From Haliotis rubra (lineage: Eukaryota), in the NCBI RefSeq assembly GCF_003918875.1, contig NW_025766002.1:4154001-4218000 (forward strand): a DNA stretch of 64,000 bases, written 5' to 3'. The notes under the pieces are model-generated. The model saw only the letters and a program-made list of their open reading frames with translations, made no database searches and was not told where the DNA came from. Shown one piece after another: positions 37,854 through 62,687 of this stretch (the first letter of the stretch is position 1; each line of letters opens with the position of its first letter). The position numbers and the translations under genes were made by a program.

Positions 37854-39190
37854 ATGGCTGTAGTTCTTCCTGGTGGACTTATGGAGATTGTCTTCTCCTT
37901 CGACACAACCGGTTCCATGAACGCCTGTCTGACCGAAATTAGAGGTCGACTCCAGGACATAATACAGCGACTCCAGGCTGACATCCCCGCCATCAGAATG
38001 GCCGTCTTCGCCCACGGTGACTACTGTACCAAATCATCATATGTCACAAAATGGATCGACTTCTCCACTGACGTCAAGAAACTCTGCGACTTCGTCATGA
38101 ACGTCAAAGGTACCGGGGGCACTGATGATGGCGGCGAGTGTTACGAGCTTGTTCTCAGACAGGTTGGGGAAAATTTGTCATGGACACCAGGATCCAACCG
38201 AGCCCTGGTCCTTGTCGGGGACGACAACCCCCATGAACCAAATTTCAGAGCTAATAAACGAAAGATAGACTGGAGAGAGGAGATTCGAACTCTCCACACA
38301 ATGGTAAGTAGATTTTTTCCCAATTGTTTCAAACATCATAATCGTATTCATATAGCACATGAAGAGTATTGTATGCCCGATATATTCACAAATCTTTATT
38401 TCCAGGGAATAAAGATTTACGGAGTCGAGTGTGATAACTGGGCTACGATATTCTACCGGACTATTTCCAAAGAGACAGAATGTCGACATCTTAAAATCGA
38501 AAACTTTACTGATATATTTGACTTCCTCATGGCCATCTGCGACAGGGAACATGGAGCAGAAATCTTTCATGTAAGTTGAACAAATTTCTCTTTTCTTTCA
38601 TATCTGCCGCTGTATCCTAATTTCAATAAAGGCCTCTATGGTTTGTAATTTCCCTTGGTTTGGCTCTAACAGCAATGTTTGGTTTATCTGTGCAGTAAGC
38701 ACAGAAATGGAAGTAATGTTTGCATCACTACGGGATGGAGTATCCTCCCCTCCCCTGCCAAAGACGAAGACGTCAGCTGGCGTTCCTGAGAAAGATGAGA
38801 CAGCACCAGTCTTAAAGACGACGACATCCATGCAAGGAGTCAAACAGGCCAGGAAGAATGCTACTGTTGCTGTCAAGGAAAAGTTGAAGGTTCCCCGTTT
38901 GAAGAAAACAGCATCCAGTCGAGGGGTCCAAAAGTCTAAACGTAGGTCAACCAGAACACCGAGAACCAAATCACTGAAGGTGAAGGGAAAATAACATTTT
39001 CAGTTGTTCGTATTTTGATGCTTGATTGAAAATTTGACTGTTTATATGATTTCTTTACATTTGTAATTCCAGAAATAAAATATATTGTGACCCTCTCCTG
39101 AGAAGAGAGGAAGGCTGTGAGAAAGACTTCTGCTTCAGAAACATGAACCGGTCACCTTGGTTCAGAGTTGCCTCCCCTAAAGTTCCCATA
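37854..39190 (+). pseudogene. vWA-GIY-YIG family copy A, probable pseudogene (vWA exons intact, 3' part broken)
   Basis: Exons 37854-38303 and 38406-38570 are intact vWA. Exon 3 (~38698-38979) lacks its VYEKEVR start and I found no in-frame acceptor nearby. Exon 4 at 39073 begins AAA TAA, carries indels and is cut at ~39190 by a LINE fragment. It could still yield a vWA-only product. Confidence 0.72.
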
Positions 39191-39550
39191 GTTGACATAG
39201 GTTAGAAATTGAAAAGACAAAATGTGTATCATTTCTTAATTATCTGTCCTGCCTTCATTGACTTAAGATGTAATTATCAGTTACTGCAATCCTATGTATT
39301 TCCCAACATATTAAATTTAAATCTTTGTTATGATTCCAAAAATGTAGATATTTCCTTGAATACTGCAAAATATGTGTCTCGTGCATTAGAAACAAGGAAA
39401 ATAATTTGTCACATTAAGATTATATATGCTGTGCATGCTTCCATTGTTATCTTTATATTTCATGTCTGTACCGATGAGGTGGTTTTTTTGTACACATAGG
39501 CCTATGGCCTCACAGTACTGGAATTAAAGATAAGATTTGATTTGATTTGA
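39190..39550 (+). mobile_element. LINE 3' end fragment inserted into exon 4 of copy A
   Basis: HFLIICPAFIDLR...AKYVSRALETRK, a GGCCTATGGCC hairpin and a (GATTT)n tail at 39534-39550. Confidence 0.65.
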
Positions 39551-40384
39551 CTTCCAAGTCCTATGATTATGCTTGAGTTGTCTCTGATAACGCTCCCATG
39601 CTTGCCATGTGTACAATTATGCAGCTGAAGGAGAAATATAAACACGGTATAGATTGTGCGCAAGAAGAAAATTACTTATTTCATGACACTAAATGAATCT
39701 GTAAGAATTCATCTCTATGTCCCTTGTCGGATGTTTCATGCAAACTTAAAGTTAAAGTTGACAGGGTTGGCTGCATGGCATTGTATCCCGATTTTGGCTC
39801 ATGCTGTCACTCACTAGTTTTATATGAAGGCTTTGAAGGTGAATTATTCATTACTGTGATTTTAAACATATATAATGCAGATATATGCACACTTAGACGT
39901 CTGTGAGGATATAGACATATACTGAGGCGAACAAATAAGGGAACAAATAATAGTACAAGTGTTCCTTTATCCTTTTCCAGGTTTCGCTGTAAGCTTTGTA
40001 TTGTGCACTGTTGGTGAAATTCTGATTATAAATAAAGGAACCATGCGATGAAGTGGTGTTCCCTTATTTGTTTCCTTCAGTATACTTGCGCATATCCACA
40101 TACACACAGGCTGATACACAAACACTGACAGACACTTTGGTCTACACATGTTAACTTCTTGCGTACATACACACATGCGCACAAACGACACACCAACCAA
40201 TTATCACACTGTGGTACACCCCCATGAATGTGGGCACTCTTGCCATCTGAATGGAAGTTCCAGACATACTGATGCATGCACATGCAATTGCACTAACATG
40301 CATTCGTAGTCCAGTGAATTGTTCGTCTGGCCAGAGAGTGGAAGGACTGTGGTTGGATAGTCACCGGTCATATACCCACATTCA

Positions 40385-40456
40385 AACACACGCGCACACT
40401 CACAGACACGCACACACACACACACACACGCACGCGCGCACGCACGCACGCACGCG
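40385..40456. repeat. (CA)n/(CACG)n microsatellite
   Basis: Read directly from the sequence. Confidence 0.85.
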
Positions 40457-40886
40457 TATCATGGAACGGTTTTTACACTTCACCTCACTGGTTCCCACAC
40501 TCAGTCTAAATTCATACCCAGACACACAAGCTACTACAAAAAGAGTGTTCTCGCTTTTACTTTCTTCCTTAAGCACGTTATTCATCACATATATTTTGCT
40601 ATGCATTCCTGGCAGTATTCAAGGGGAATTTGGTGTAATTATGTAAATACTTGTGTAAGGGTTGGCGGCATTGAAAACAATAACCTCACTTGATCTTTTG
40701 ATCTAAAGGGTTTCCACAGTGATATTACATCTGCATGTTGAAACAGTACGCGATGCTTGGCGCAAGTATCGGAAGGTTAAATCTGTGCACATTGTGCTTC
40801 ATGTAACAATGTTTAGTGAATACATAACATTGAGAAAGTATATTATCGTTGTTCCGACAATGCTTTAACCAACATTAGGAATATAA

Positions 40887-41918: not shown

Positions 41919-41947
41919 GTACACATTCAACCTGAGACTATTTGTCC

Positions 41948-42545: not shown

Positions 42546-42589
42546 TATTTACGCAGAGGCAATATCATTTATTACTTCACAGGGCAGAT

Positions 42590-44938
42590 ATGGCACTACT
42601 CCCTCCTGCTGGACTCCCGGAGATTGTCTTCTCCTTTGACACAACCGGATCTATGAGAAGCTGTCTGGCTGAAGTCCGAGGTCGACTCCAGGACATGATA
42701 CAGCGACTCCAGGCAGACATCCCCGCCATTAGAATTGCCGTCTTCGCACACGGTGACTACTGTACCTCATCCGTATACGTCACAAAGTGGATCGACTTCA
42801 CCACTGACGTCAAGGAACTCTGCGACTTCGTCATGAACGTCGAAGAAACAGAAGGCATCGGAGACGGTGGCGAGTGTTACGAGCTTGTTCTCAGACAAGT
42901 TGGGGAGGAGTTGTCATGGACACCAGGATCTAACCGTGTTCTTGTCGTTGTCGGGGATGATGAACCCCACGGTCCGAACTTCAGAGGCAATACACAAAAG
43001 ATAAACTGGAGAGAGGAGACAAAAACTCTTAAGAAAATGGTAAGCCCAATTCCTCTCAATTTCTTAACTGTGTACCCGTTGATGCTACAACTAAACACGT
43101 TGTGGTAAGTTCTTTAAGTGGCATTTTGAAGTTGGTGTTTTGAACGTGGAGAGTTCTATGGCTGTAAAACTTTATAGTTAATGCGAGCGACGTTTCTGTG
43201 TAGCTACTAACACCCTTGTCAACCATGCTTGCAGAAGTTGCATATCCATATAACTAACGCCGATACACTTGCTTGATATTATTTCTGCAAGTGTGGTTGA
43301 CAACGGTGTTACTAGCTAGACCGACACGTCGCTCATATTGCTAAGAAAGAAGTTTATATCTCTCATCGACGATGTGGTGAGTTGAAATCCTATTAATCTC
43401 TGTGTTGAGACTCTTGTCACTTGATCAACAGAAAAGAACAGGATACTGACTATTACTCTTAATGTGTAATCAATGTATTTTCAGGGAGTAAAAATCTATG
43501 GCGTTCAATGCAGTGACAGAGCTACAAGGTTCTATCAGACCATTTCCAAAGAGACAAGAGGCCGGCATCTTAAATTGGACAACTTTACGAACATCTTTGA
43601 CTTCCTCATGGCCATCTGCTACAGGGAGCATGGAGCAGACATCCTTCATGTAAGTTGAAATACCTGCTCTTACCTCTGTCACAAGCCTCTTCAAGACTTT
43701 CAAGTTTGCAGTTTGACTTCGCTTGGTTTAATCGACATATGCATAAGAACGTCTCACCTCATATCATTCTATTCTTCAAGCACACTACACAGTCCTCTGC
43801 TTATCAGTGAGATTCGTCCTTTCCTTTACCAGGTGTATGAGAAAGAAGTTCGAGCCCGTCGTGTTGATGGTGCCCTCAGCGAGGACATGGAAGGAATGTT
43901 TACATCCCTGCGTGATGGAAAGGTCTCCCCTCCTCCACGAAAAAAGACTATTACAATCGGTGCCGCAAAGAAAAAGGATCTCAGTGCTTCCACCTTAAAG
44001 AAAACAGCAACCAACAAAAGAGTCCTTAAGGCCAAACCTAAATCAATCAGAACGAAATCAGTAAAGGTAAAGTCTTCTATTATATATTTTAAATCGATGA
44101 CACTGTTTAGTTTGTAGTAGATATTCGACTATGGTAAATTGAGGCAGTCTCAAATGAAAACTTCATATTAACATTTATTTGGCTATTACAAGTTTAGGGG
44201 CGGTGGGGTAGCCTAGTGGTTAAAGCGTTGGCTCGTCACGCCGAAGACCCGGGTTCGAATCCCCACATGGGTACAATGTGTGAAGCCCATTTCTGGTGTC
44301 CCCCGCCGTGATATTGCTGGAATATTGCTAAAAGCGGCGTAAAACCAAACTCAGTCAGTCAGTATTACAAGTTTAGTGAAACACATGATGCAATTTCATT
44401 ATTTCAGAAACGAGCAAAAATTGTTGCACCTGTTTTGAGAAGAGAGGAAGTCTTTGACAACAACTTCAGCTTGAGAAACTTGGACTGGTCACATTGGATC
44501 AAGGTTATCTCCCCTAATATTCCACTCAAACTGGGTGTTCAATGGGAGAAAAGACGATGTACCAACTCTGGATTCAGGAAGAAGACGGTCTTCAAGCTCA
44601 GCAACAATAAACCAGCTCTCTACGAGGTTGGTGTTCAGAAAACCCCATACGGACGAAAGTTCGTAGTATTTAGCAAGTTCTGTCGCCATATTCCCGATAA
44701 TGTTAACTGGGAAACACGGCTATTCGGAAACAAAAATGTTAAAGTTCAGGTCAACAATGTTCTGTCTCAGAACTGCAGTGTTTATGTGCGGAGGGTGGTG
44801 TACAGAAGAGCATCAAGTCACCTTAAAACTGTAGCATTGCTAAAATCTTATGACTATGCATGGCGACGTCCAAGATCACGCTCTTGTGCCCGAAATGTGT
44901 ACAAGCAAACCTGCACAATCTCATCAAGCAAATTGTAA
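42590..44938 (+). CDS. vWA + basic linker + ET/HRT-like GIY-YIG domain protein, copy B (intact, ~459 aa, 4 coding exons)
   Basis: Exons 42590-43039, 43485-43649, 43833-44066, 44408-44938, all GT-AG and phase 0, 1380 nt in total. MIDAS motif FSFDTTGSM, plus AHGDYC, GECYELVL and VGDDEPH. C-terminal WSHW, PALYEVGV and LLKSYDYAW. No signal peptide. Exon structure matches copies C and E. Confidence 0.88.
43165..43355. mobile_element. Inverted pair of Penelope-like element ends with hammerhead-like motifs, intron 1 of copy B
   Basis: Imperfect inverted arms 43185-43236 / 43282-43334, each reading TTGACAA-stem-GA(A/C)ACGTCGCTC. Confidence 0.45.
44198..44362 (+). mobile_element. SINE family 1 in intron 3 of copy B (young)
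   Basis: Consensus-like; 14-bp TSD TATTACAAGTTTAG. Confidence 0.9.
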
Positions 44939-45727: not shown

Positions 45728-45981
45728 TATCCGTGAAGGTCCGGGTTAGAATTAATCTTCAGTAACCCATGCTTGTCCTAAGAGGCGACTAACGGGATCG
45801 GGTGGTCAGACTCGCTGACTTGGTTAACACACGTCATCGGTTCCCAGTTGTGTAGATCGATGCTCATGCTGTTGAACACTGGGTTGTCTGGTCCAGACTC
45901 GAATATTTACAGACCGCCGCCATATAACTTGAATATTGCTGAGTGCGGCGTTAAACTAAACTCACTCACTCACTCACTCAC
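45728..45981 (+). mobile_element. SINE family 2 abutting the left edge of the segmental duplication
   Basis: Full length, (CACT)n tail. Confidence 0.85.
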
Positions 45982-46699
45982 TAGCTGTTATTTCGATTCA
46001 CGCATGTGAATGAGCAATGCAAAGACCTTTGTGCTCATCAGGCAGAACTGCTTTTTCACCATAAAGACAACCAGCTTTCTTTCGAAATTCATTGCACCGC
46101 GATATATTTAAGATATAATTGATGTACGGTCTCATGAATCGAATACTTCAGAGAGAAACTGAACAATCCACTACTATTATTATTCATATGTTAAACGGAA
46201 GAATATTTTGTTTCTGACACATATCATGGAAATACATCTTCCGGCATTTCCATTTGGAAACGTTTTCAATCTCCTACAGTATTAATGCTCTTTGAGTATG
46301 CTTTATTTGTGAAAACCGACATATCCTTGTAAACGGACGATCTAACTATATCTCTAAAAGGTGAAAGTGCAATATCCATAAGCAAAATACACACCTGCCA
46401 TAGTGGTATATATTTCACTTTATGTACTCTTGTCCAGCAAACGTCTTCTTCTTCAGATTTTATTCTCGTTCCAAACTGAAACACAGAAACTAAATCTGTT
46501 ATCTAGTGTTGTGGAACTGTTCCATTGAAAAAGTTATATATTTTTTATATATCGTTTGATACCTCTTTTAAATCGTATGATATAGCATTGTAGCTATACC
46601 AACTTGTTGACGGGTATGGAGATACGGACGTTTCGTACACTTTCATGTGATCAAAAATGATCATTGTAATGTGTACACATTAAAGGAAATACATGTACA

Positions 46700-47448
46700 T
46701 AACTAAGTGCATCAAGTTCTGGCTTATTCTACTGCATATGCCAAACTATAGATACCCTGAAGCCTGCTACAGTATGTCGGTACAGCTGGATAGAGTGGGG
46801 AGGATAACCTGGGCTACTTATGTGGAGACACTGCTTGACCACCTAGGATTGAGCTACTCCTGGCTACAGCAGGGTGTAGGGGATGTGACCTACTTTCTAT
46901 CTCTTGTTAAACAGAGGCTTACTGACAACTTCTCTCAGCAATTCTCCAGTGATTTACAGGCAAGCAGCAGGCTCACACACTACAGAGTCCTCTAATTTTA
47001 GTTGGATCAGAAAAATAGTTAATGCTGATCAGAGGGAAAAAACTGAGAATAACCCTAACCCGCTTTAGATGCTCAAATCATAAGCTTGCAGTTGAAACTG
47101 GGAAATGGGCGAAAACTGAATAAAATGAAAGATACTGTATCTATTGTTTACAACAAGTGGGCAAAAAATCATTCAGGACTAAACACATTCTATATTTATT
47201 TGTCCTCACTAAGAAGAATTAAGAACTACATATTTGCCCTGGATGAACAATCGCCACTCAAGCACAGACAACTTCATCAAAGCAATGAATCTATATTCTC
47301 TTGAAAGTGCCAAATTTAAATTGTAGCTGCAAGCAAGTGCAGATCTTCCTACCTCAGCAAAGGATAGTTTATATCTGGGAAAATGCGTGCATGTGGTTGT
47401 GTATATATATGACTGTGTACTTCAAAGTATTTTACATGTAAGTGTTTC

Positions 47449-47508
<60 letters not shown>

Positions 47509-47635
47509 ATGTGTGTATGTGAGTGTTAGTGTGTGTAAATATATTTCTTTTCCCTTTGATATATTTTTGTGTGTTCTATATATGTGTGTGTAAAGGCATG
47601 TGTAAATGTATTATTTCCTCAGATATATTTATGTG

Positions 47636-47685
<50 letters not shown>

Positions 47686-47805
47686 AAATGTATTATCCCC
47701 TTCTGATATATTTATGCTTGTCTCATATATTTTTCACATATTTATGCATTAATGATGTAAAAGCCTTACACTTTAGGCTGGAGGCCTATCTACAGACAAA
47801 AAACA
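46700..47805 (+). mobile_element. Degenerate LINE 3' fragment (RTE-X/CR1-like) with microsatellite-rich 3' UTR
   Basis: KCIKFWL..RYPEACY..WATYV..LGLSYSWLQQGVGD..KQRLTD and RFRCSNHKLAVETGKW; (TG)n and (TA)n tracts. Confidence 0.75.
47450..47503. repeat. (TG)n microsatellite
   Basis: Read directly from the sequence. Confidence 0.9.
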
Positions 47806-48919
47806 CAGTAAAAATACACCGAAGTACAGGTTATGTATGAATTAATACGGATATTCTTGACATTCTTTTCCTTGTATTTAATTTTATCATGAAAACTGAT
47901 CAGGAGATACAACTGATCTTCTATATCGCATCTGCTCACAAGAGAATATACCATTACAACTGGTCAGTCCTGTTTTTCATGGGTGTGCGGAATTTGTTAA
48001 AGCAACTATTAAACGAAGTAAAAACAACCCACAGTTTTATTTTGTTTCTTTTGGAAAATGCTGTTAGCCTCTTGAAATGAAATCGTTTTGATTTGGTGGA
48101 AAATGGGTCTGGGAATGGCGAAATCTAAAGATGAAGAAACATGTCAAACCTAATTGTTTTTGGTTAAAACTCAGAGAAAACGTTTATTGTAATAATACAT
48201 TGAATTAAAATTGCCAGTATATTTGTGCAAGATAGAGCATTATGTTTGACCGCCTATCATATTTGGAAACATAGTGACACTCCTTCTGGGAAGTTTTATC
48301 TCAGCAACAATAGACAAATGATTAACCACAGAGAACACAGCTGTATGCATGTTCACACACTTTGGTAAATCATAATGGTTTCCATAATAAACAGCTGAAT
48401 GTAAGAACGTATTGATTAACGAAGATACGTTTGCCAAGGAAATATCTGCAATATTAATACATGTTTCACGAAGATTATGATTGATGTTCTGCCTGGCAAG
48501 TGAAGCATTCCGCGAAGCAATGATGTCACCTCAAAATGTACAAACTCTACCCATTGCGGCTATATACCGTTTACGATGAGAATATCTTCCGACAGACAGT
48601 GTAAGGAGACTGGATATAAGCAACGTATTTGAGAGAGCATGTTCATTGTTTCTGAACGCACGTTTCACATGTCGATTCTACATATGACACTTTCAACGAA
48701 TGAACATTTCCTGAGTCAAAGGTGTTTTAATAACTCCCCGACTACATTTTCATCTCCAACGGCTTAATCAGGTCGTTTCCCTTGTTTCAAAAGAGACGCA
48801 TAAATTAAAACGCATACACGCAAACAACGTCTGAGCCTCAAAACACAACCACAGAACAGGTCTGAACACGCCAACCGCAACAAGCCCCAGCCCGTTCCCA
48901 TTGATCGCCTCACAGCCAG

Positions 48920-48955
48920 TATAAAAGCTGGCCGGCTCGCTGAGTAAGATCAGTT
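48920..48955 (+). promoter_or_regulatory. Core promoter of copy C: TATA box + initiator
   Basis: TATAAAA at 48920 and TCAGTT Inr at 48950-48955 (~30 nt spacing), then a non-coding exon ending at donor CAG|GTAAAC (49082/49083). Confidence 0.7.
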
Positions 48956-49359
48956 TGCTCATATACACTACTGAAAGACTTAACCGCCTGTCAGTTACTC
49001 CTAACAGGAGCACTTATAAACTGCACCTAACTGCAGGGGAACAGAACAAGAACAAAATATTTGCCTTCACCATTCAAAACAGGTAAACTGAGGAACATAT
49101 TCACAGTGATAGTTTATATATACGTACAATTCTGCGTCTAGAAACATCAACAAAACGGCTTCAGATTATTCCATATTTATCTGCCTTCTTTGTAAGATAA
49201 AGGTCAGTAATTAAAATAGGTCTAATACACATTTTACAAAATCATATCAATGACAGAATTGTGAATGAATATTGATGCGCATTTCTTCATCACTTAATTG
49301 TCTTCTGTACGCATTAGGATTAATAACAGTGTTTTCAATTTTTTTTCAACAGATTCAGC

Positions 49360-51185
49360 ATGGCTTTGCTTCCTCCTGGTGGACTTCCAGAGATTGTCTT
49401 CTCCTTCGACACAACCGGCTCTATGAGCAGTTGTCTGGCCGAAGTCCGAGGGCGACTCCAGGACATGATACAGCGACTCCAGGCTGACATCCCCGCCATC
49501 AGAATGGCCGTCTTTGCACACGGTGACTACTGTGACAAACACAACTATGTCACAAAGTGGATAGACTTTTCCACTAACGTCAAGGAACTTTGTGACTTTG
49601 TCAACAACGTCAGTAGCACTGGAGGCGGAGACTCCGACGAATGTTACGAACTCGTTCTCAGACAAGTGGGTGAGGAGTTGTCATGGACCCCTGGATCCAA
49701 TCGTGCCCTCGTCATGATTGGCGACGCCAACCCCCATGAGCCAGACTACCCCGACAACAAACTCAGGATAGACTGGAGGGAAGAGATTCAAACCCTCAAT
49801 AAAATGGTAAGCTGAAGGTCAAATAGAAGTTTCAACACAACGAAATACACGCATTCAAATGCTCTACACAGTGCTGAAATGCATTTTGCGTCGTAATTGT
49901 CATATTGTGTATTTTATTCATCATGTCACATTTGTCAAATCCATCTAAATCATTTCCAGGGAGTGAAGATATATGGGGTAGAGCGTGGATCTGGCACCAT
50001 GGAATTCTACAAGAGAATGTCACAGGAGACAGGTGGACGCCATCTCCAACTTGACAGCTTCTCCAATGTCTTTGATTTCCTAATGGCCATCTGCTACAGG
50101 GAACATGGAGCAGACATGTTTGATGTAAGTTCGCCCTACGCTTATTTTGAACACAAAACCTAAATATTACTCATAATGGATTTAGTGAACTTTCCTCAAC
50201 ATAAATCATTCCCATGCTTTCCTGTTTTAACATTTGTACATGCCATTTCAGGTCTACGAGAAAGAGGTCCGAGGTCGTTGTGCTGAAGGCGCCCTCAGCA
50301 AGGACATGGAGAAAATGTTTACATCGCTACGCGATGGAGTAGCCTCCCTTCCATCGCCAAAGAAGATCACAACCGGTTGCAGTGGAAAAAATGTCACGAT
50401 CCCCACTCTGAAGAAAACTACATCCTTCTCAGGAATTAGAAAGGCCAAGCCTAAATCTATCAGGAGACCAGGAACAAAATCACTGAAGGTATGTTTTATA
50501 AATGTTTGTTTTCAAAATGGATAACATTATATATTCAAATGTTCAATTGTTTGGAAAATATTGATAACCGTCATATTTACCGATTTAAGTTATACCACTG
50601 TGGCATTACTCTTCTCAAACAAATCGATAATTTGTACATAATGTATTATTTCAGAAACCAACAAAGTTTGTGACTCCTCTTTTGAGAAGAGAGGAAGTCT
50701 TTGAGAACAACTTCAGCTTAAGAGACATGGACTGGTCAGCCTGGGTCAAGGTTATTTGCCCTTTTGTTCCTCTCAAACAGGATGCACAATGGGAAAAAAG
50801 ACGGGGTGCCAACCCTGGATTCAGGAGAAGAACTATCTTCAAGTCCCAGAACAATAAGCCAGCTCTCTACGAGATCAGTGTTCAGACCACCAGGTTTGGA
50901 CGTAGGTGTGTGGTATTCAGCAGGTTCTGCCACCACATTCTTGATAATGTTAACTGGGAAACACGACTCCTTGGAAACAAAATTGTCAGAGCTCAGGTGA
51001 ACAATGTTGTCTCTCAGAACTGCAGTGTCTATGTGCGGAGGGTGGTATATAGAAGAGCATCAGGTCACGTCAAAACAGCCGCAATGATGAAGTCCTATGA
51101 CTACGCTTGGAGGCGTCTAAGATCACGATCTACTGCTCGACATGTTTACAAACAAGGCAGCACAATTTCATCAGACAAAGTATAG
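49360..51185 (+). CDS. vWA + basic linker + ET/HRT-like GIY-YIG domain protein, copy C (intact, ~459 aa)
   Basis: Exons 49360-49806, 49960-50124, 50252-50488, 50655-51185 (1380 nt, GT-AG, phase 0). Motifs FDTTGSM, TGGGDSDECYELVL, IGDANPH; C-terminal PALYEISV and SYDYAW. Upstream non-coding exon ~48952-49082; AATAAA at 51609. Confidence 0.9.
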
Positions 51186-52527
51186 ACTTTTTCTGAACAT
51201 TGACTGATAATATCAGGTGTGTGCTGAAAGATACGCGGACATAGCTGTTTTTCCCGAGATGCCACGTATCAAACGGACGTTTCTTTCAATGTATAGAATG
51301 TATATGGAGAATGTACATATATGAAATCAGATGACATTCTTGATATTACTGGAATGAGATTTGTCATTGAAAGACAGCGATAACGAATCTCACATCATAC
51401 AACTTGCTTCATGCTTTATGTGAAGGAGAGGGCATGATGTTTCATTATAGTGCTTGAATGTGGATTAGTGTGTTCATCCGAATGAAAGAGACTGATGAAT
51501 GTGATCGATGTTGTACATATGTCACTGTTTGTGTTAAGGTGTATATACAACTCATTCGCTGACCTGCATTGTTTATATCTTTGGCAACATGTGCAATGTT
51601 AGTATAGGAATAAATAAAACAAACTTTTGAGAAATTAATACACATTATTTTCTTTGACAATGCATTTTACATGAGAGTGTTGTCGTAATCCGAGACATAA
51701 TACGTCTGATTGCGACTTAGACTTCACTCAAATCACAAACCAAATATCAACCCTCAACTTCCATATATGTTTTAGGACAAACATCACAACGAATAAATGG
51801 AACCTTCGTCTCTGTTGGCTACAACATAAGAGATCATTAGTGAGGGTTTAAAAAGTACCATCATCGCAACAGTGCATTTTGTTGTTTACAGAGTTCAAGG
51901 TCCGTATCCAAATATTTAGTAGCGGATTCATGGTTCATTCCATACTGTCATCTTTGGTCTGTCAGTACCGTGTCCAAGCTTTGACACAAATAGTAAACGT
52001 TTACAAACTTAGTTCATCCGATGTTAAAAGCTAAAAGAAACAGAACACACCAACACTTATACAAGTTATCCAGTTTCTAATATATATTATTGTATTAAAT
52101 TGTATTGGTATACATTGGGCTTCCTTTCTCCTACCTCAAGCTGATGCTCAGTTATATAACTTGAAAATGTAACTGTAATAACCAAATGGAGAAAAGTCTT
52201 AGATGATTTTATGATTAACAACAAGACGCTATTAATTCAGAGAACATTTGCCCAATATTTTGATTGTAGTTTCTATAAATTGTATTAACAATTAATGTAG
52301 TTAAACAGTAATAGCAAATGCCCACGAATATCGCCGTTATTGTTTTCTGTTAAAAGCATCACCGACATGCAATGTTACAGTGCAGACCGTGGAATATTCA
52401 GCAAGATATGTGGCCATCAGACAGAATTGCTCAGCGTAACAATCCGCGAAGTAAACACGTCACACATTCTTTGTTATATCGCTACACGACACTGCGACAA
52501 TCAATATAACGGACGTGTCACTAGACG

Positions 52528-52690
52528 CGAGTGTGTGAATATGTTTTTACACCGCCTTTAGCAATATTCCACCAATATCACCCTGGGGGACACCAGAAAC
52601 TGACTTCACACATTGTACCCATGTGGGGAATCGAACTCGGGTCTTTAGCGTGACGAACGGACTCTTTAACCAATAGGTTACCCCCACAGC
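52528..52690 (-). mobile_element. SINE family 1, diverged
   Basis: Reverse-complement match. Confidence 0.75.
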
Positions 52691-53304
52691 TCCTATCGTG
52701 ATTAACATTGTCATGACCACCAAAAGACAGTAATGATAATTATGTTCCAAACACAAATACATCGTTTATTTATTTTTACCCTTATTAAAACGTTTACGCA
52801 CAAGCAACAACTGCTTGCTAACCATGACAATCTTTCTTTCCAAACTCACTGAAATATATTTGAAATATCACTGATGGTCACTATTTCTGATCTAGCTGAT
52901 AAGCTGAGTATTATAAATATATGTCACTGAAACGAGAGAATATTGTGTGTCTGACATAATGTATATCATGGAAAGTTGGCTTTATTATATTGAATCATAT
53001 TACTTTGGTAGCATGGGACTTTCCATGGAAATGTTTTTGTTATACTTTCAATTGCTACCTACTGTGAATCGTTTGATAAGGCATTTTCTTTTAAGTTACT
53101 TTATCAGCATGTATCGAGTTACGGTGGTAACTAACACAGAAGCTTTCAATGTTATATGTAGACAGTTAAAAAAGGATACATGGAATTTCAGTGCAAATGA
53201 AAATAGATAATAGAATGGTATTTATAATTAACTTCTTTTCCCAGGGTACATATTGTGGAAGCTAGCAAAGATAGTACAAGTGATATTTCACTTTTCACAA
53301 GGAT

Positions 53305-53750
53305 ATACCTCATATGATAGCAATGTGATTTGCAAGGTTCAGGAAAAGCATGCTAAATATGCGGACCTCGCCAATGAAATGCCTCGATTGCATCCCAAGT
53401 ACACTGTCGTCAGACTCCCCATTGTTCTCGGTGCCCTTGGTTTGGTATCTTCTGATCTCTTGGCGCAGATCAGGAGAGTGCCCGAGTTCTCCACCGGGAG
53501 CACAGCCCTTCTGACATTCTGGGTAATGCAGAAGGTTGCAGTTTTGGGAAGTCTTCATATTCTCCGGAATGTTCTTGGTGGGTTCGACTAAGCAGCGTTT
53601 TCTGGGAGAAGTCCCATTTGCTGTCTGGGCTGCGTGTAGACGGGGCAAGGGCCCTGAACTGATGATGAGCCTTACCAGCCTGACTGTGCCAGGATCACCC
53701 AAACCCTCTCTGCTGCATTTTTCACGCTTCACTACTGGTATTTAAAAACA
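53305..53750 (+). mobile_element. 5'-truncated RLE-type (R4/Dong-like) non-LTR retrotransposon 3' end
   Basis: SYDSNV..KVQEKHAKYADLANE...LPIVLGALG...MQKVAVLGSLHILRNVLG*, the restriction-like endonuclease C-terminus pattern, followed by a short 3' UTR. Confidence 0.75.
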
Positions 53751-53899
53751 CCTGGTTCAAGGAATAACTTCAAAACGTATCCTGTCAGAGGGGGTGGGAT
53801 AAAAGTGAAAATTCATTACGCGGAAGGTAACATCAATTTATGCAAATGGTTTCCAAAAAGTACCGTCAGTCTGGTGAAACTGGAAAATACAACGAAACG

Positions 53900-54100
53900 G
53901 TATATATTTTGTGCAAAATAGTGTACAGTCTTGTAACTATGTTATATTTGCGGTTACACATTCTTAATAAAGTACAGATTCTAGTACTTTGGGGGATTGA
54001 GTCCCATACGGGATTCGAACCCACACCCTCAGAGTCAGGCACCTTAATCACCAGCACACATAGTCAGCCGCCTAATCCTCTCGGCCATCCCGGCTTCCAC
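53900..54100 (-). mobile_element. SINE family 4 (tRNA-Leu/Ser-like head)
   Basis: GGTTCGAATCCC B box on the minus strand; shares the AAAGTACAGATTCTAGTAC body with 3600-3745 and 22560-22750. Confidence 0.7.
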
Positions 54101-54124
54101 AAAGAATAACTTTGTCTGCTGGCT

Positions 54125-55097
54125 ACAATTTCTTAATTCCAGAAACCATCAAAGTTTGTGACACCTCTTCTGAGAACGAACATATTTGACCTCCTCATGG
54201 CCATCTGCTACAGGGAGCATGGAGCAGACATCCTTCATGTAAGTTGAAATAACCTCTTCTCCTGTCATAGTATTTTTCATATTTCCCCACATTAAACATT
54301 AAACAACATAAAGGAAACGAAACACGTTTATCGGGGATGTTTGTTTTTCTCTTCACCAGTTATACGAGAAAGAGGTTCGAGCCCGTTGTAGGGATGGTAC
54401 CCTCGGCTATGACATGGAAGGAATGTTTACATTCCTACGTGATAGAATAGCTTCCCCTGTTCAATCAACAACGACGACGACAACGATTACAAGCGGCGCC
54501 GCAGAGAAAACTGCGACGGCTTCTCCCTTAAACAAAATAACATCCATGCAGAAAGTCAGGAAACCAAAACCCAGATGCATCAGGAGGACAAGGACAAAAC
54601 CTTGATGGATAAATTTAGTTATTCTGTTATGGCTTGTCAAGACGTATGATCTAACAATTTCTTAATTCCAGAAACCATCAAAGTTTGTGACACCTCTTCT
54701 GAGAAGAGAGGAGGTCTTTGAAAACAACTTCAGCTGAAGAGACATGGACTGGTCATCCTGGGTTAAAGTTATCTCCCCTGACCTTCCTCTCAAACAGAAT
54801 GCACAATGGGAGAAAAGACGGGGTGTCAACCCTGGATTAAAGAGAAGGACAGTCTTCAAGTCCCAGAACAATAAGCCAACTCTCTACGAGATCAGTGTTC
54901 AGACGATCAAGTACGGGCGTAGGCGTGTGGTATTCAGCAAGTTCTGCCACCATATTCCCGATAATGTGAACTGGGAAACACAACTCCTTGGGAACAATGT
55001 TGTCAGAGCTCAGGTGAACAATGTTGTGTCTCAGAACTGCAGAGTGTTTGTGCGCAGGGTGGTATACAGAAGAGCATCAGCTCACGTCAAAACAGCT
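54125..55097 (+). pseudogene. vWA-GIY-YIG family copy D, 5'-truncated rearranged pseudogene
   Basis: No exon 1. Exon 2 remnant 54176-54238. Exon 3 runs 54360-54605 and ends in TGA with its donor lost. Exon 4 starts at 54672, has an in-frame TGA at 54735 and is truncated at ~55097 before the YDYAW motif. Confidence 0.85.
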
Positions 55098-55904
55098 AAT
55101 CAATTCTTAACCTATATTTCAAATGTAATCATTTAGTTTTTTTCAACCCAAAGAGTGAGTGGTTGAAATATGTAATAAATTATATAAAACATAATTTGAG
55201 CATTTTCTTTCGGTTATTGTCCACTAGATGAAGGAAATGAAGAGGTTCCTGTTTAGGCTTTATGTATTGGTCATCGTTAAGTTTAATTTATAATAAGTTC
55301 ATATTGCTGAAATATACTCACTGCGCACACGGAAGGAGATCTGGGTCGCGAAAAGGTAAACAAAGTAATATGAAATTCTGTATAGTATTAGCATATCTCT
55401 TAAATGCTGTTCAAAATATGGGATGTTTTGAGTAGCAGCTATATGTTCACGAAAATACAACACATAGACGGTTCTTGAACAAAGTGTTACGATGTCTGAA
55501 ATGGCACAGAATTTACGTCATCGAATTATTACAATGCATATTCACACAATCATGATCTTTTCTTGAAATACACACGTAGTTAATGATTTATATATTCAAA
55601 GGATCAGCTATGGTGTATTTCAGCCCTATGCAAACAAAATACATTCATCGTTGACCTGTGTGTCACAGAATCACAGAATATATTTTATCGGCTACTACTG
55701 GTCATGCAACTGATTTTCCGCGAAGCAATTTCGCCATCGCTATTTTTTAGAAACTCCTCAAATATGTCGTTCACTGAAACTGTATACATTAGTGTGAGGA
55801 GCACTGACATAAACTGTGCATTTGGGAGAGTATTTTCATCTGTTCTGAATGTGTTTCATGTGCCAAACGGAATATCACCCCATAATATCTTCCCGTCATT
55901 GGAA

Positions 55905-56122: not shown

Positions 56123-58269
56123 CTTGTAAACAGAAATTTGGGTTGAAAAAGGTACACAGAAACACAGAAGCTAAATCAGTCGACTGACATACAGTGCACG
56201 TGAACGCCATTTGTATCTGCATGTATAAGCTGCATCTAATATTAGCAGATTCATAATCCACAAGAACTAAACTAAATATCTAATGCTACCCTTTGAAAAG
56301 GTATTAAGGCATTTACAGTGTTAGTGTATATACATGCATACAAATCTGTGTCCGATAACAGCCTCACAAACCTTTTTCAAAGAACGTGCATGCGCGCATT
56401 CATTTTGTAAAGGAAAGGTGGACAACTGAATTACGTTTACTTAAACTAACGTACAGCTATTTTCTATATTTAACACACATATAGTATTAATTTAGCTATG
56501 AATACATGAATGTGCCAACTGAATAATCCGGTATGTAGAAGTAACCTCAGCAGCGGAAATGCTTAGTAGTGCTACAAATCTTCGTATCCCTTTTACGTTT
56601 TTATTTACAAAAGTACATTTACAAATTAGAATTGTTGTAATTGGAAGTATATGCATATTTCCAGTACACCAGGTGTGTTCGTAATCAAGATCATATACGT
56701 AAAATATCATAAGGATTTACACTTTCATTGTAATCAAGTTATTATCAATGCGATGCAAACTGAATGCGAATTAAGTACACTGAGCTTAATTTCCTCCAAC
56801 CTTCAGCTGATGCGCAGTTTAACAATCATTAAACAATATATACCTTTATAATTATATACAGCTGACAATAACTTAAACCCATATGCATTTAATGGATTCT
56901 TCTACCTGATATGTGTTACCCTTGTTTAGTAAAACTGATTGCCTTGAAACAAGAACTTCACGATGGAGAAAGTATCTATTCTACAACCTCATTTATACGA
57001 GGTATTTACCACAACACGCTACTAATTCAGGCAATATTTGTTGTAGTTCGGTATTCCTAGCTTTGTCATTTAAAGTATTGACTTTGAAAAATAGCAACGA
57101 TATGTTATGTTTTAATGTTGACCACACAGCATTCAGCGAGAGGTGTGACGAGCCATCAGGCGAAACTGTTTGCCGAGCATATCCGCGAAGTATACACGTC
57201 ACACATTCTTTCTAAACTCGTTGCATTACACTGCGCTTCTCAATGAAACCGAGTCCTCAGATGACGTGCGAGGAGAAATAAACGTAAGCAATGTGTTTGC
57301 GAGATATTTTCTAAAGGTCATGAACGCTTTTCTTGTATTAAACGCCACCATGATATGAAGATACTTGGTATCACATTGTATAATTTAGAAAGACCACAAA
57401 AATAGTAATGCATAGACTTATGTTAAGAACAAAACAGAAAATACATTTTTGAAATGTTATTAATGCAAAAAACAATTTGATCAATGTAATATTATCAAAA
57501 CATCATCAAGGAACAACTATCAGCAATGTGTCATCTAGCTGCTATTTCGATTCACACATGTGAATGAGAAATGCAAAGACCTTTGTGCTCATCAGGCAGA
57601 ACTGCATATTCACCATGAAGACAACCAGGTTTCTTTCGAAATTCATTGCACCGCGATATTTAAAATATAATTGATGTACAGTCTGATGAATCGAATATTG
57701 TAGTTATCTATATACTTCAGAGAGAAACTGAACAATCCACTAATATTATTATTTATATGTTAAACGTAAGAATATTCTGACCCTTATCATGGAAACTACA
57801 TCTTCCGGCATTTCCATTTAGAAACGTTTTCAATCTCCTACAGTATTACTGCTCTTTGAATATACTTTATATGAGAAAACTGACATATCCTTGTAAACGG
57901 ACTATCTAACTATATCCCTAAAAGGTGAAAGTGGAATATCCATCAAGAAAAAAATACCCACCTTCCATAGTGGTATATATTTCACTTGTGTACTCTTATC
58001 CAGCAAACTTCTTCCTCTTCCGATTATATTCTCGTTCCAAACTGAAAAACAGAAAACTAAATCTGTTATCTAATGATATGTTGTGGAACTGTTCCATTGA
58101 AAATGTGTTTTATTTTTTTATATATCGCTTGATTCCTCTATTGAATCGTATGATATAGCATTGTAACTATACCAGCTTGTTAACTGGTAGATACGGACGT
58201 TTCGTACACTTTCATATGATCAGAAATGATCATTGTAATGTGTACACATTAAAGGAAATACATGTATAT

Positions 58270-58977
58270 GACTATAAGTGCATCAAGTTCTGGCTTATTC
58301 TCCTGCATATGCCAAACTATAGATACCCTAAAGCCTGCTACAGAGTGTCGGTACAGCTGGATAGAGTGGGGAGGATAACCTGGGCTACTTATGTGAGGAC
58401 ACTGCTTGACCACCTAGGATTGAGCTACTCCTGGCTACAGCAGGGTGTAGGGGATGTGACCTCTTAAACAGAGGCTTACTGACAACTTCTCTCAGCAATT
58501 CTCCAGGGATTTACAGGCAAGAAGCAAATTCAAACCCTACAGACTCCTCTAATTTTAGTTGGATCAGAAAAATAGTTAATACAGATCAGAGAGAAAAAAA
58601 CTGAGAATAGCCCTAACCCGCTTTAGATGCTCAAATCATAAGCTTGCAGTTGAAACTGGGAAATGGGCGAAAACTGAATAAAATGAAAGATACTGTATCT
58701 ATTGTTTACAGCAATTGGGACAAAAAATCATTCAGGATTAAACACATTTTATATTTATTTGCCCTTACTATGAAGAATTAAGAACTACATATTTTCCCTT
58801 AATGAACAATCGCCACTCAAGCACAGACAACTTCATCAAAGCAGTGAATCTATATTCTCTTGAAAGTGCCAAATATATTGTAACTGCAAGCAAAGGATAG
58901 TTTATATCTGGAAAAAATGCTTGCATTGTATGCGTGGTTGTGTATATGTATGACTCTGTACTTGAAAGTATTTGCAC

Positions 58978-59008
<31 letters not shown>

Positions 59009-59140
59009 CTGTCTGTGTGTATGTGAGTGTTAGAGTGTGTAATATTTCTTTTCCCTTTGATATATTTTTGTGTGTTCTATATATGTGTGTGTAAAGTCAT
59101 GTGTAAATGTATTATTTCCTCAGGATATAGTTATGTAGGT

Positions 59141-59211
<71 letters not shown>

Positions 59212-59335
59212 GGTGTAAATGTATTATCCCCTTATGATATACTTATGTCTGTTTCATATATTTTTCACATATTTATGCATTAATGATGTAAAAGCCTTGC
59301 ACTTTGGGTTGGAGGCCTATCTACAGAAATAAAAA
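58270..59335 (+). mobile_element. Duplicated copy of the LINE fragment at 46700-47805
   Basis: Same motifs; part of segmental duplication unit 2. Confidence 0.75.
59146..59208. repeat. (TA)n microsatellite
   Basis: Read directly from the sequence. Confidence 0.9.
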
Positions 59336-60399
59336 GTAGAAATACACCGCAGTTCAGATTATGTATGAATTAATACGGATATTCCTGATATTCTGATACA
59401 GCTGATCCTCTATATCGCATCTGCTCACAAGGGAATGTACCATGACAACTGGTCAGTCCTGTTTTTCATGGGTGTGCGGAATTTTTAAAGCAACTATTAA
59501 ACAAAGTGAAAAACAACCCACAGTTTTATTTTGTTTCCTTTGGAAAATGCTGTTAGCCTCTTGAAATGAAATCGTTTTTCATTTGGTGGAAAATGGGTCT
59601 GGGAATGGCGAAATCTAAAGATGAAGAAACACCTAATTGTTTTTGGTTAAAACTCAGAGAAAATATTTATTGTAATAATACACTGAATTTAAATTACCAC
59701 TATATTTGTGCACGATAGAGCATTATGTTTGACCGCCTATCATATTTGGAAACATAGTGACACTCCTGGGAAGTTTTATCTCAGCAACGATAGACAAATG
59801 ATTAACCACAGTGAACACAGTTGTATGCATATTCACACACTTTGGTAAATCATAATGGTTTCCATAATAAACAGCTGAATGTGGGAATGTATTGATTAAC
59901 GAAGATACGTTTGTCAAGGAAATATCTGCAATATTAATACATGTTTCACGAAGATTATGATTGATATTCTGCCTGGCAAGTGAAGCATTCCGCGAAGCAA
60001 TGATGTCATCTCAAAATGTACAAACTCTACCCATTGCGGCTATATACCGTTAACTATGAGAATATCTTCCGACAGGCAGTGTTAGGAGACTGGATATAAG
60101 CAACGTATTTGAGAGAGCATGTTCATTGTTTCTGAACGCACGTTTTACATGTCGATTCTACATATGACACTTTCAACGACTGAACATTTCCTAAGTCAAA
60201 GGTCTTATAATAACTCCCCGGCTACATTTTCATCTCTAACGGCTTAATCAGGTCGTTACCCTTGTTTCAAAAGAGACGAATAAATTGAAACGCATACACG
60301 CGAACAACGTCTGATCCTCAAAACACAACCACAGAACAGGTCTGAACACGCCAACCGCAACAAGCCCCAGCCAGTACCCATTGATCGCCTCACAGCCAG

Positions 60400-60435
60400 T
60401 ATAAAAGCTGGCCGGCTCGCTGAGTAAGATCAGTT
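60400..60435 (+). promoter_or_regulatory. Core promoter of copy E: TATA box + initiator
   Basis: TATAAAA at 60400, TCAGTT at 60430, donor at 60565/60566; same layout as copy C. Confidence 0.7.
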
Positions 60436-60841
60436 TGCTCATATACACTACAGTTGAAAGACTTAACCGCCTGTCAGTTACTCCTAATAGCAGCACTTAT
60501 AAACTGCACCTAACTGCAGGGGAACAGAACAAGAACAAAATATTTGCTTTCACCATTCAAAACAGGTAAACTGTGGAAGATATTCACAGTGATAGTTTAT
60601 ATATACGTACAATTCTGCGTATAGATACATCAACATAACGGCTTCAGATTATTCCATATTTATCTGCCTTCTTTGTAAGATAAAGGTCAGTAATTAAAAT
60701 AGGTCTAATACACATTTTCAAAAAATCATATCAATGACAGAATTGTGAAAGAATATTGATGCTCATTTCTTCATCATTTAAATGTCTTCTGTACGCACTA
60801 AGATTAATAACAGTGTTTTCATTTTTTTTAACAGATTCAAC

Positions 60842-62687
60842 ATGGCTTTGCTTCCTCCTGGTGGACTTCCAGAGATTGTCTTCTCCTTCGACACAACCGG
60901 CTCTATGAGCAGTTGTCTGGCCGAAGTCCGAGGTCGACTCCAGGACATGATACAGCGACTCCAGGCTGACATCCCCGCCATCAGAATGGCCGTCTTCGCA
61001 CACGGTGACTACTGTGACAAACACAACTATGTCACAAAGTGGATAGACTTTTCCACTAACGTCAAGGAACTTTGTGACTTTGTCAACAACGTCAGTAGCA
61101 CTGGAGGCGGAGACTCCGACGAATGTTACGAACTCGTTCTCAGACAAGTTGGGGAGGAGTTGTCATGGACCCCTGGATCCAATCGTGCCCTCGTCATGAT
61201 TGGCGACGCCAACCCCCATGAGCCAGACTACCCCGACAACAAACTCAGGATAGACTGGAGGGAAGAGATTCAAACCCTCAATACAATGGTGAGCCGAAGG
61301 TCTATATAGTCAAATAAAAGTTTCAACAAAACGAAATACACGCACTCAAATGATCAACACAATGTTGAAATGCATTTTGCCTCGTGATTGCAACTTAAAT
61401 ATTATACGCTACAATTTCATCATGTCACTTATATCAAATCCATCTTAATCATTTCCAGGGAGTGAAGATATATGGGGTAGAGCATGGATCTGGCACCATG
61501 GAATTCTACAAGAGAATGTCACAGGAGACAGGTGGACGCCATCTCCAACTTGACAGCTTCTCCAATGTCTTTGAATTCCTAATGGCCATCTGCTACAGGG
61601 AACATGGAGCAGACATGTTTGATGTAAGTTCGCCCTACGCTTATATTGAACACAAAACCTAAATATTACTCATAATGGATTTAGTGAACTTTCCTCAACA
61701 TAAATAATTCCCATGCTTTCCTGTTTTAACATTTGTACATGTCATTTCAGGTCTACGAGAAAGAGGTCCGAGGTCGTTGTGCTGAAGGCGCCCTTAGCAA
61801 GGACATGGAGAAAATGTTTACATCGCTACGCGATGGAGTAGCCTCCCTTCCATCGCCAAAGAAGATCACAACCGGTTGCAGTAAGAAAGATGTGACGATC
61901 CCCACTGTGAAGAAAACTACGTCCTTCTCAGGAATTAGAAAGGTCAAGCCTAAATCTATCAGGAGACCAGGAACAAAATCACTGAAGGTATGTTTTATAA
62001 ATGTTTGTTTTCAAAATGGATAACATTATATATTCAAATGTTCAATTGTTTGGAAAATATTGATAACGATCATATTTACCGATTTAAGTTATACCTCTGT
62101 GGCATTACTCTTCTCAAACAAATCGATAATTTGTACATAATGTATTATTTCAGAAACCAACAAAGTTTGTGACTCCTCTTTTGAGAAGAGAGGAAGTCTT
62201 TGAGAACAACTTCAGCTTAAGAGACATGGACTGGTCAGCCTGGGTCAAGGTTATTTCCCCTGTCGTTCCTCTCAAACAGGATGCACAATGGGAAAAAAGA
62301 CGGGGTGCCAACCCTGGATTCAGGAGAAGAACTATCTTCAAGTCCCAGAACAATAAGCCAGCTCTCTACGAGATCAGTGTTCAGACCACCAGGTTTGGAC
62401 GTAGGTGTGTGGTATTCAGCAGGTTCTGCCACCACATTCTTGATAATGTTAACTGGGAAACACGACTCCTTGGAAACAAAATTGTCAGAGCTCAGGTGAA
62501 CAATGTTGTGTCTCAGAACTGCAGTGTCTTTGTGCGGAGGGTGGTATATAGAAGAGCATCAGGTCACGTCAAAACAGCCGCAATGATGAAGTCCTATGAC
62601 TACGCTTGGAGGCGTCTGAGGAGGTCGCGATCTACTGCTCGACATGTTTACAAACAAGGCAGCACAATTTCATCGGACAAAGTATAG
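60842..62687 (+). CDS. vWA + basic linker + ET/HRT-like GIY-YIG domain protein, copy E (intact, ~460 aa; near-identical to copy C)
   Basis: Exons 60842-61288, 61459-61623, 61751-61987, 62154-62687 (1383 nt). Upstream non-coding exon ~60432-60565; AATAAA at 63059. Confidence 0.9.

Follow-up and report, generated by a model that had tools for sequence, protein, structure and literature searches.

A 64,000-nucleotide stretch of the genome of the abalone Haliotis rubra (RefSeq assembly GCF_003918875.1, contig NW_025766002.1, positions 4,154,001 to 4,218,000 of the forward strand), hereafter the window, carries five paralogous genes on the plus strand between its positions 37854 and 62687. They belong to a tandem array of transcribed genes, and the intact ones encode a soluble intracellular protein of about 460 amino acids (aa) that consists of an acidic von Willebrand factor A (vWA) domain, a basic linker, and a basic domain with a predicted GIY-YIG fold. 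The C-terminal domain is of the type found in the plant EFFECTOR OF TRANSCRIPTION (ET) proteins, and is most likely not a canonical nuclease, as judged from the residues at its catalytic positions. What is new is probably the architecture itself, uncharacterised, phylum-spanning and equipped with a probable pseudo-nuclease; both kinds of domain were already known.

Gene copies, splicing and annotation

We located the copies by blastn and tblastn with the exons of one of them (copy C) and by listing of open reading frames (ORFs) over the whole 64-kb window. The five copies, designated A to E, span 37854–39190, 42590–44938, 49360–51185, 54143–55115, and 60842–62687, respectively (Table 1). Copies B, C, and E are intact, each with an ATG, four coding exons, three phase-0 introns with GT..AG borders, and a stop codon, and encode proteins of 459, 459, and 460 aa. 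The other two copies, A and D, are decayed. Copy A retains exons 1 and 2, has lost 13 codons from the start of exon 3, and has a one-base shift in exon 4, which reads K-stop in phase 0 and stops after about 40 codons. Copy D has no exon 1 and contains a chimeric exon, in which the first codons of exon 4 are joined to the end of exon 2; its exon 4 carries an in-frame stop (54735–54737) and is truncated at the 3' end. The similarity searches and gene models agreed with the initial annotation, made from the sequence alone, which had described five same-strand paralogs sharing a layout of four coding exons, with B, C, and E intact and A and D broken. It should be mentioned that the vWA frame of copy A is intact and its C-terminal domain destroyed; should its splicing follow that of the paralogs, the product would be a protein of vWA domain plus linker only.

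Copies C and E are 98% identical. Self-blastn revealed a segmental duplication between 45981–52510 and 57535–63988 (90.6% identity over 6.6 kb), and C and E are products of this event. Birth and decay of genes within the array, which had also been suspected at the outset, is borne out by this duplication, by the decayed copies, and by the family tree (see below).

Transcripts were assessed with Logan contigs from four runs of one species, labelled 'RNA?' (that is, with a guessed type), aligned to 49250–55200. The contigs contained the joints 49806|49960, 50124|50252, and 50488|50655, all GT..AG and all identical to the predicted introns of copy C. They cross all three joints and so connect the vWA exons with exon 4, as the proposed fusion demands. 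Before 49348–49350, loose ends of contigs matched 49061–49077, after which a GT donor follows, with the 5' non-coding exon ending at 49082. A non-coding exon thus precedes the coding ones in these genes. The contigs also showed a 3-base insertion at 51118–51119, the same as in copy E. Therefore, some contigs derive from E or from an allele, and the expression is not assignable to a single copy.

The protein of copy B is identical to P0161, the NCBI entry 'uncharacterized protein LOC124275379 [Haliotis rubra]', and the spliced protein of copy C is collinear from end to end with a 459-aa protein of H. asinina at 94% identity. The genes are thus already RefSeq models, but without a functional name. 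Literature searches with accession numbers, with PF19239, and with vWA plus GIY-YIG found no paper describing the family or the architecture and no characterised protein combining a vWA domain with a GIY-YIG-like domain. A limited term search of the 2006 survey of the GIY-YIG superfamily (PMC1564403) returned no ET/HRT proteins and no similar animal family. Accordingly, 'undescribed', the term initially applied to this system, stands as far as papers and characterised proteins are concerned, but not for databases, where RefSeq models exist and one relative lists VWA and PF19239 in its precomputed Pfam annotation.

Table 1. Exons of the five gene copies and the duplicated segment (window positions; vWA, von Willebrand factor A; RNA joint, splice joint in the RNA contigs).
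Feature	Position	Strand	Basis
Copy A exon 1 (vWA, MIDAS DTTGS)	37854..38303	+	tblastn, 76% identity to C exon 1; GT donor
Copy A exon 2 (vWA end)	38406..38570	+	blastn/tblastn; AG acceptor, GT donor
Copy A exon 3 (expanded basic linker, YEKEVR start missing)	38692..38979	+	tblastn, aligned from residue 14 only; sequence read
Copy A exon 4 remnant (rest of GIY-YIG-like domain absent)	39073..39190	+	tblastn; sequence read
Copy B exon 1	42590..43039	+	gene model
Copy B exon 2	43485..43649	+	gene model
Copy B exon 3 (helical extension and basic linker)	43833..44066	+	gene model
Copy B exon 4 (ET-type GIY-YIG-like domain, with stop)	44408..44938	+	gene model; PF19239, E 4.4e-4
Copy C 5' non-coding exon (start approximate)	49003..49082	+	loose ends of RNA contigs
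Copy C exon 1 (exon itself from about 49350)	49360..49806	+	VWA_4 and VWA matches; RNA joint
Copy C exon 2	49960..50124	+	RNA joints on both sides
Copy C exon 3 (YEKEVR..LRD helices, then disordered basic linker)	50252..50488	+	RNA joints
Copy C exon 4 (complete predicted ET-type GIY-YIG-fold domain, with stop)	50655..51185	+	AlphaFold2 model; fold matches
Copy D chimeric exon (exon 4 start fused to exon 2 end)	54143..54238	+	blastn/tblastn; sequence read
Copy D exon 3	54360..54599	+	tblastn
Copy D exon 4 (pseudogene)	54672..55115	+	tblastn; sequence read
Copy E exon 1 (5' non-coding exon ends near 60565)	60842..61288	+	tblastn; gene model
Copy E exon 2	61459..61623	+	gene model
Copy E exon 3	61751..61987	+	gene model
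Copy E exon 4, with stop	62154..62687	+	gene model; 98% identical to C
Duplication, first copy	45981..52510	.	self-blastn; partner 57535-63988

The ET-type GIY-YIG domain and its catalytic positions

An exhaustive HMMER search with exon 4, counted as cluster representatives, returned at least 150 representatives, 65 of them at E ≤ 1e-10, and in nearly all the domain was C-terminal. The Pfam family PF19239 (GIY_YIG_domain) was matched by 34 of 150 representatives. The best of these matches (E 1.3e-45) was that of P0124, a six-domain clam protein that also matched PF01541 and UvrC models weakly. Against the PF19239 gathering cut-off of 21.4 bits, copy B fell just short (20.5 bits, E 4.4e-4) and copies C and E gave no match, whereas the relatives P0003 and P0164 scored above it (26.2 and 26.7 bits).

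The AlphaFold2 model of the exon-4 domain, built on a 99-sequence alignment, had a predicted local distance difference test score (pLDDT) of 95.5 and a predicted template modelling score of 0.90. We compared it with 48,161 chains across the PDB by VIA, a structural search independent of Foldseek. Ranks 1–6 and 8 were all occupied by GIY-YIG enzymes: T4 EndoII, Hpy188I, PD-T4-3, UvrC, I-TevI, the N-terminal domain of AtGRXS16, and Eco29kI. The best match, T4 EndoII, reached Z 7.2 over 113 residues, and GIY-YIG matches extended down to Z 4.1, with sequence identity of about 8%. A Z score of 7 alone is middling by the VIA calibration, and the fold is called because the top ranks are unanimously GIY-YIG. 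Among 550,129 Swiss-Prot entries with AlphaFold models, Arabidopsis ET3 ranked first (E 1.5e-4, TM-score 0.59, query residues 1–164) and Arabidopsis ET2 second (E 1.1e-3, TM-score 0.58), both with a probability of 1.00, followed by UvrC domains. In the clustered AlphaFold database, five entries named 'Uncharacterized' or 'VWFA domain-containing' came first, then entries named uncharacterised or 'GIY-YIG domain', and last plant ET2-like proteins. The organism column was blank for the five top entries, which we take to be mollusc proteins from their accessions. An Atlas cluster with 100% PF19239 belonged to Streptophyta.

Other searches were less informative. Foldseek with the domain model against the PDB gave nothing at E ≤ 0.001, with Hpy188I and EndoII as weak matches, and a profile of the domain alignment found no GIY-YIG match among PDB sequences. 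The Atlas feature search with exon 4 yielded only weak matches (best 0.65). Homolog searches aimed at plant ET sequences, with the domain alignment and with residues 417–583 of P0015, returned only the queries or near-identical sequences; a related-loci search with the domain alignment gave no usable pattern, and NCBIfam matches were marginal. Taken with the fold search, the top-ranked ET3 and ET2 models, and the PF19239 matches of relatives, the modelled domain is identified as a GIY-YIG fold homologous to the ET-type domain. This is the assignment that the initial annotation had made from the order of motifs, and RRE, WSxW, PALYE, WETRL, VRR, and YDYAW are all present in the copies. Descent from the GIY-YIG domain of Penelope retroelements was considered and rejected, as no reverse transcriptase is present and the best matches are ET-type.

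The plant ET proteins (Arabidopsis ET1, ET2, and ET3, and HRT) share with the abalone protein the same domain family, including an N-terminal extension, and the motif order RE, WSxW-like, (G/A)LYE, and YDYAW. The domain is N-terminal in the plant proteins, whereas it is C-terminal in the abalone family, and the Cys/His ET repeats of the plant proteins are absent from the abalone protein, in which Pfam detects only vWA families and PF19239; a vWA domain stands in their place. ET genes have been called exclusively plant (PMC6585611), whereas the present family is animal (lophotrochozoan). The abalone protein therefore has one domain in common with the ET proteins without being one of them.

To map catalytic residues, numbered here along the exon-4 peptide and counted over 107 vWA-fused homologs, repeat 6 of P0124 was aligned to Thermotoga maritima UvrC and the positions were carried over via a MAFFT alignment of the domain. 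The alignment runs through GVY...VYxGKAKRLxxRLxxY; the match is not significant alone, with UvrC as the top PDB match. The ends of the ranges aligned with I-TevI (2–93 on model 68–156) and with UvrC (1–89 on 55–154) independently place Y72 and R153. The GIY Tyr corresponds to Y72 (in ALYE) and is kept, with Y in 86 of 107 homologs. At the place of the YIG Tyr, the three intact copies have F88 (family-wide Y in 53 and F in 47), with the strand register taken from the alignment. The helix-1 Arg corresponds either to N100, by MAFFT, or to R104, by helix geometry; R104 occurs in all three intact copies, and its position holds R in 49 and K in 15 homologs. At the position of the metal-binding Glu of helix 3 stands T141. 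Residues 135–147 of B, C, and E include no acidic one, and across the homologs Glu is not conserved at 140–141. The Asn after helix 3 is replaced by R153 (R 36, K 29, S 16, N 8). Instead, complete or almost complete invariance is seen at R12, E13, W27, W30, E73, R128, Y148-D-Y-A-W152, and R162. Among the vWA-fused homologs, the canonical Glu and Asn are thus not conserved. Compared with canonical GIY-YIG nucleases (T4 EndoII, UvrC, I-TevI, Hpy188I), the abalone domain has the same fold and the first Tyr, but lacks the metal-binding Glu, the Asn, and any nuclease partner domain, and it has extra beta elements at both its N- and C-terminal sides.

The clam protein P0124 (Mercenaria mercenaria LOC123525290, 991 aa) has an N-terminal helix-turn-helix of the transposase type followed by six tandem ET-type GIY-YIG domains, and the E...N spacing of active enzymes is kept in at least the last repeat.

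The vWA domain, the linker and the spread of the family

Exon 1 alone matched Pfam VWA_4 with 30 bits (cut-off 27) and VWA with 24 bits (cut-off 23.8). D17, T19, and S21 were invariant among the 107 full-length homologs, and T87 and D122 were conserved in at least 90%. By sequence, D17-x-T19-x-S21, T87, and D122 correspond to a metal ion-dependent adhesion site (MIDAS) in which Thr replaces the first Ser. The initial reading of an intact MIDAS holds, with DTTGS, TGGGD, and GDxxPH all present. An AlphaFold2 model of the H. asinina homolog (mean pLDDT 82) showed a vWA fold with two extra helices (200–231), a disordered stretch (234–290, pLDDT below 50), and then the independent C-terminal domain. 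Foldseek with the vWA model found integrin beta I-like domains, TFIIH p44, and collagen VI (E about 1e-8), and phmmer with the vWA sequence found no match among PDB sequences. As also described initially, there is no signal peptide, and no membrane segment was seen (highest 19-residue hydropathy 0.77). A secreted shell-matrix vWA protein, considered as a candidate, was ruled out by this absence together with the viral and bacterial type of the vWA domain.

The nearest non-animal relatives of the vWA domain are viral and bacterial. In IMG/VR, 150 stretches contained vWA relatives, the best of them at 40–48% identity over residues 11–230 on contigs of 100–530 kb, and GenBank phage matches included 'Virus Rctr197k' (45%), a Rhizobium phage, and crAss-like phages. 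Language-model neighbours of the vWA domain were cyanobacterial, phage, and giant-virus vWA clusters; the structural neighbours of the top neighbour cluster, rather than of the abalone query, included giant-virus RING-vWA and ciliate alpha-kinase-vWA proteins. These relationships agree with the cytoplasmic microbial or viral type to which the domain had been assigned. The VWA_4-type proteins of phages, giant viruses, and bacteria ('Virus Rctr197k', crAss-like, and those automatically named 'R811-like') share with the abalone protein the vWA domain plus two-helix extension, and FDTTGSM, GDYCD, TGGGD.PECYELVL, and GDxxPH are identical between the viral and abalone domains. The three viral proteins examined have another domain at their C-terminus, some 130 aa long (phrog_26613, an annotation without function), as opposed to the basic linker and GIY-YIG-like domain of abalone.

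These three proteins (L001:3977-5062, L002:3983-5095, and L016:3980-5113) are 360–377 aa long with vWA domains up to 48% identical, and are encoded on IMG/VR contigs of 180–325 kb. Among the neighbours of the viral vWA genes, none was conserved beyond clade-specific synteny. The language-model neighbours of phrog_26613 pointed weakly (scores 0.45–0.51) to the beta-barrels that follow the vWA domains of Ku70/80 and of Integrator subunits 6, 13, and 14.

The three parts of the abalone protein differ sharply in charge. The vWA part (residues 1–233) has an isoelectric point (pI) of 4.9 and a net charge of −12; the linker (about 57 aa), in which no acidic residue occurs, has a pI of 11.8 and a net charge of +15; and the C-terminal domain (about 170 aa) has a pI of 10.9 and a net charge of +21. 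The basic nature of the linker and of the C-terminal domain, noticed at first inspection, is evident from these values, and other family members have a K/R-rich stretch (20–28% K+R) right before the C-terminal domain. The ratio of nonsynonymous to synonymous substitution rates (dN/dS, Nei-Gojobori) between B and C was 0.16 for the vWA domain, 0.24 for the linker, and 0.26 for the C-terminal domain, and that between C and E was 0.22 overall. Across all parts, the values between copies were 0.14–0.39, around 0.2. Such ratios indicate purifying selection in every part of the protein, the presumed pseudo-nuclease included. Sites variable among 17 Haliotis paralogs clustered in the linker and in vWA residues 23–24, 59–62, 85–93, 123–133, and 158–168. 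By the secondary structure of the model, most of these vWA stretches are loops around the MIDAS site, the 59–62 loop less certainly so.

A search with a full-length relative returned 953 proteins at E ≤ 1e-5. The family, defined by sequence similarity, thus has 953 full-length members or more and extends over molluscs, a brachiopod, and a nemertean, which bears on the question of phyletic spread raised by the initial annotation. The 120 homologs listed were from gastropods, bivalves, a chiton, the brachiopod Lingula, and the nemertean Lineus, and all were named 'uncharacterized' or 'VWFA domain-containing'. In a tree of 80 sequences built by a quick method, the Haliotis array paralogs formed one clade (SH-aLRT branch support 99) with Gigantopelta on the sister side (join, SH-aLRT 91). 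Sub-clades within it held orthologs of H. asinina, H. rubra, H. cracherodii, and H. rufescens. Most of the paralogs are thus of old origin and have been kept, and recent gains (C/E) and losses (A, D) of copies are occasional. A second, distant Haliotis lineage was found elsewhere in the tree, as were lineage-specific duplications in scallops, venerid clams, unionids, and Physella. Short proteins with the domain alone were by taxonomy mostly unnamed ENA or Logan ORFs; probably they are exon-4 ORFs on unannotated eukaryotic contigs, and a stand-alone domain was not counted as a separate architecture.

Several other features lie in the window. About 5 kb upstream of the array, an exon at 32225–32779 (+) encodes a fibrinogen C-terminal globular domain (Pfam Fibrinogen_C, E 8e-30). 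Mollusc fibrinogen-related proteins are lectin-like immune genes. A repeat of about 160 bp at 52520–52700, resembling a short interspersed nuclear element (SINE) with a tRNA-like arm, has at least 14 further copies, for example at 44195–44353 (intron 3 of copy B), 15356–15495, and 34766–34905. It accounts for the RNA contig depth of about 6,000–8,000 at 52434–52831, and for the lone Rfam tRNA match at 15434–15492. Three ORFs, 2593–2934 (−), 46693–46995 (+), and 58177–58467 (+), have no Pfam match and resemble retrotransposon remnants (for instance by a CxxC...HxxxxC tail); two of them sit in the duplicated unit that carries C and E. Runs of N occupy 22862–23172 (311 bases) and 36417–36641 (225 bases).

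Proposed function and its alternatives

We propose that the protein is a non-cutting, nucleic-acid-binding adaptor to which a partner docks via the MIDAS, a proposal to which we give an even chance. Nucleic acid, most probably DNA, would be bound by the basic linker and the degenerate GIY-YIG domain and would not be cleaved in the canonical way, and the vWA domain would use its MIDAS face to coordinate an acidic residue of another protein. The adaptor could then bring this partner to nucleic acid or report a ligand there, and it may serve chromatin or repair, or else defence. That the paralogs differ chiefly in the linker and in the loops at the MIDAS suggests that their partners or ligands differ as well. 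A similar logic, an intracellular vWA docking module coupled to a nucleic-acid-binding part, is seen in Ku70/80, TFIIH p44, and Ro60; this is an analogy only, because their second domains differ and they have no specific sequence relationship to the abalone protein.

Several points weigh against an adaptor of this kind. Both nucleic-acid binding and the lack of cutting are predictions, a high pI alone is no proof of nucleic-acid binding, and the MIDAS partner is hypothetical. The residue map comes from sequence alignment and alignment ranges, the equivalent of the catalytic Arg is ambiguous (R104 is available in B, C, and E), and the adaptor model does not account for the invariance of E73 and R128. 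Moreover, PMC6585611, citing Ivanov 2008, reports that the ET2 domain nicks DNA, and a relative of it could keep a non-canonical activity.

A defence or genome-conflict function is rather unlikely in our judgement. Here, the vWA domain would sense a pathogen or danger ligand, the ET-like domain would act on foreign or own nucleic acid, and conflict would drive the birth and death of copies. A tandem array in which intact copies stand beside decayed ones and a duplication is recent would fit such a sensor-effector, as would the lineage-specific expansions in several molluscs, the clustering of paralog differences at the MIDAS-face loops, a vWA type common to phages and giant viruses, and the nearby fibrinogen-domain gene. 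However, dN/dS is about 0.2 in all parts, the paralog lineages are older than the Haliotis radiation and kept as orthologs, and the supposed effector domain lacks the catalytic Glu and Asn. When a full-length homolog, the domain of exon 4, and the vWA relatives from viruses were compared with PADLOC-DB, none matched, which also counts against defence. A fuller version, which we consider unlikely, would make the protein a lophotrochozoan module for immunity or genome defence, combining a virus- or bacterium-derived MIDAS vWA sensor with an ET-type GIY-YIG reader of nucleic acid; the array paralogs would read different viral or damage ligands by their MIDAS-face loops.

It is likewise improbable that the domain is an active nickase or nuclease with a non-canonical site (e.g., Y72 together with E73 and R128), which would make the protein a vWA-regulated DNA-processing enzyme like plant ET2. 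The GIY Tyr is retained in most homologs (86/107), E73 and R128 are invariant, and R104 may be the catalytic Arg. The ET2 domain complements UvrC nicking (PMC6585611), and repeats of P0124 combine intact E...N spacing with weak UvrC matches. Against such an enzyme stand the helix 135–147 without any acidic residue in B, C, and E, the lack of a conserved Glu in the 107 homologs, and the replacement of Asn by R, K, or S in 81 of them. In addition, Y72 and E73 are adjacent residues of one beta strand, and by strand geometry the side chain of E73 should face the opposite way.

Still less probable is a C-terminal domain that binds protein or a small ligand and no nucleic acid, so that the family would be a pure protein-scaffolding adaptor. 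The family-specific invariant residues do differ from the nuclease set, and the conserved N-terminal extension (RE...WSxW) packs onto the core; but the net charges of +21 on the domain and +15 on the linker, the K/R-rich region (20–28%) before the domain in other members, and the action on DNA of homologs with known function favour nucleic acid. Finally, the idea that the array consists of pseudogenes, chance ORFs, or gene-prediction artefacts, to which the decay of two of the five copies might point, can practically be dismissed in view of the spliced transcripts, the three complete ORFs with canonical introns, the dN/dS of about 0.2, the collinear H. asinina protein at 94% identity, and the at least 953 homologs across phyla.

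The ET-type GIY-YIG domain, in the literature the hallmark of plant-specific regulators, thus appears as the core of a large animal family of at least 953 proteins. A domain that seems to lack the metal-binding residue yet stays under purifying selection is a clear case of a pseudo-enzyme, and this presumed pseudo-nuclease is fused to a vWA domain otherwise typical of phages and giant viruses, for which a horizontal origin becomes a concrete question. The finding may surprise specialists of GIY-YIG and ET proteins and should be useful for mollusc genomics, as hundreds of mollusc proteins now called 'uncharacterized', among them those of farmed abalone, oysters, scallops, and clams, thereby gain a domain-level hypothesis that can be tested. 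If a role in defence were true, the family would represent a new kind of invertebrate immune receptor.

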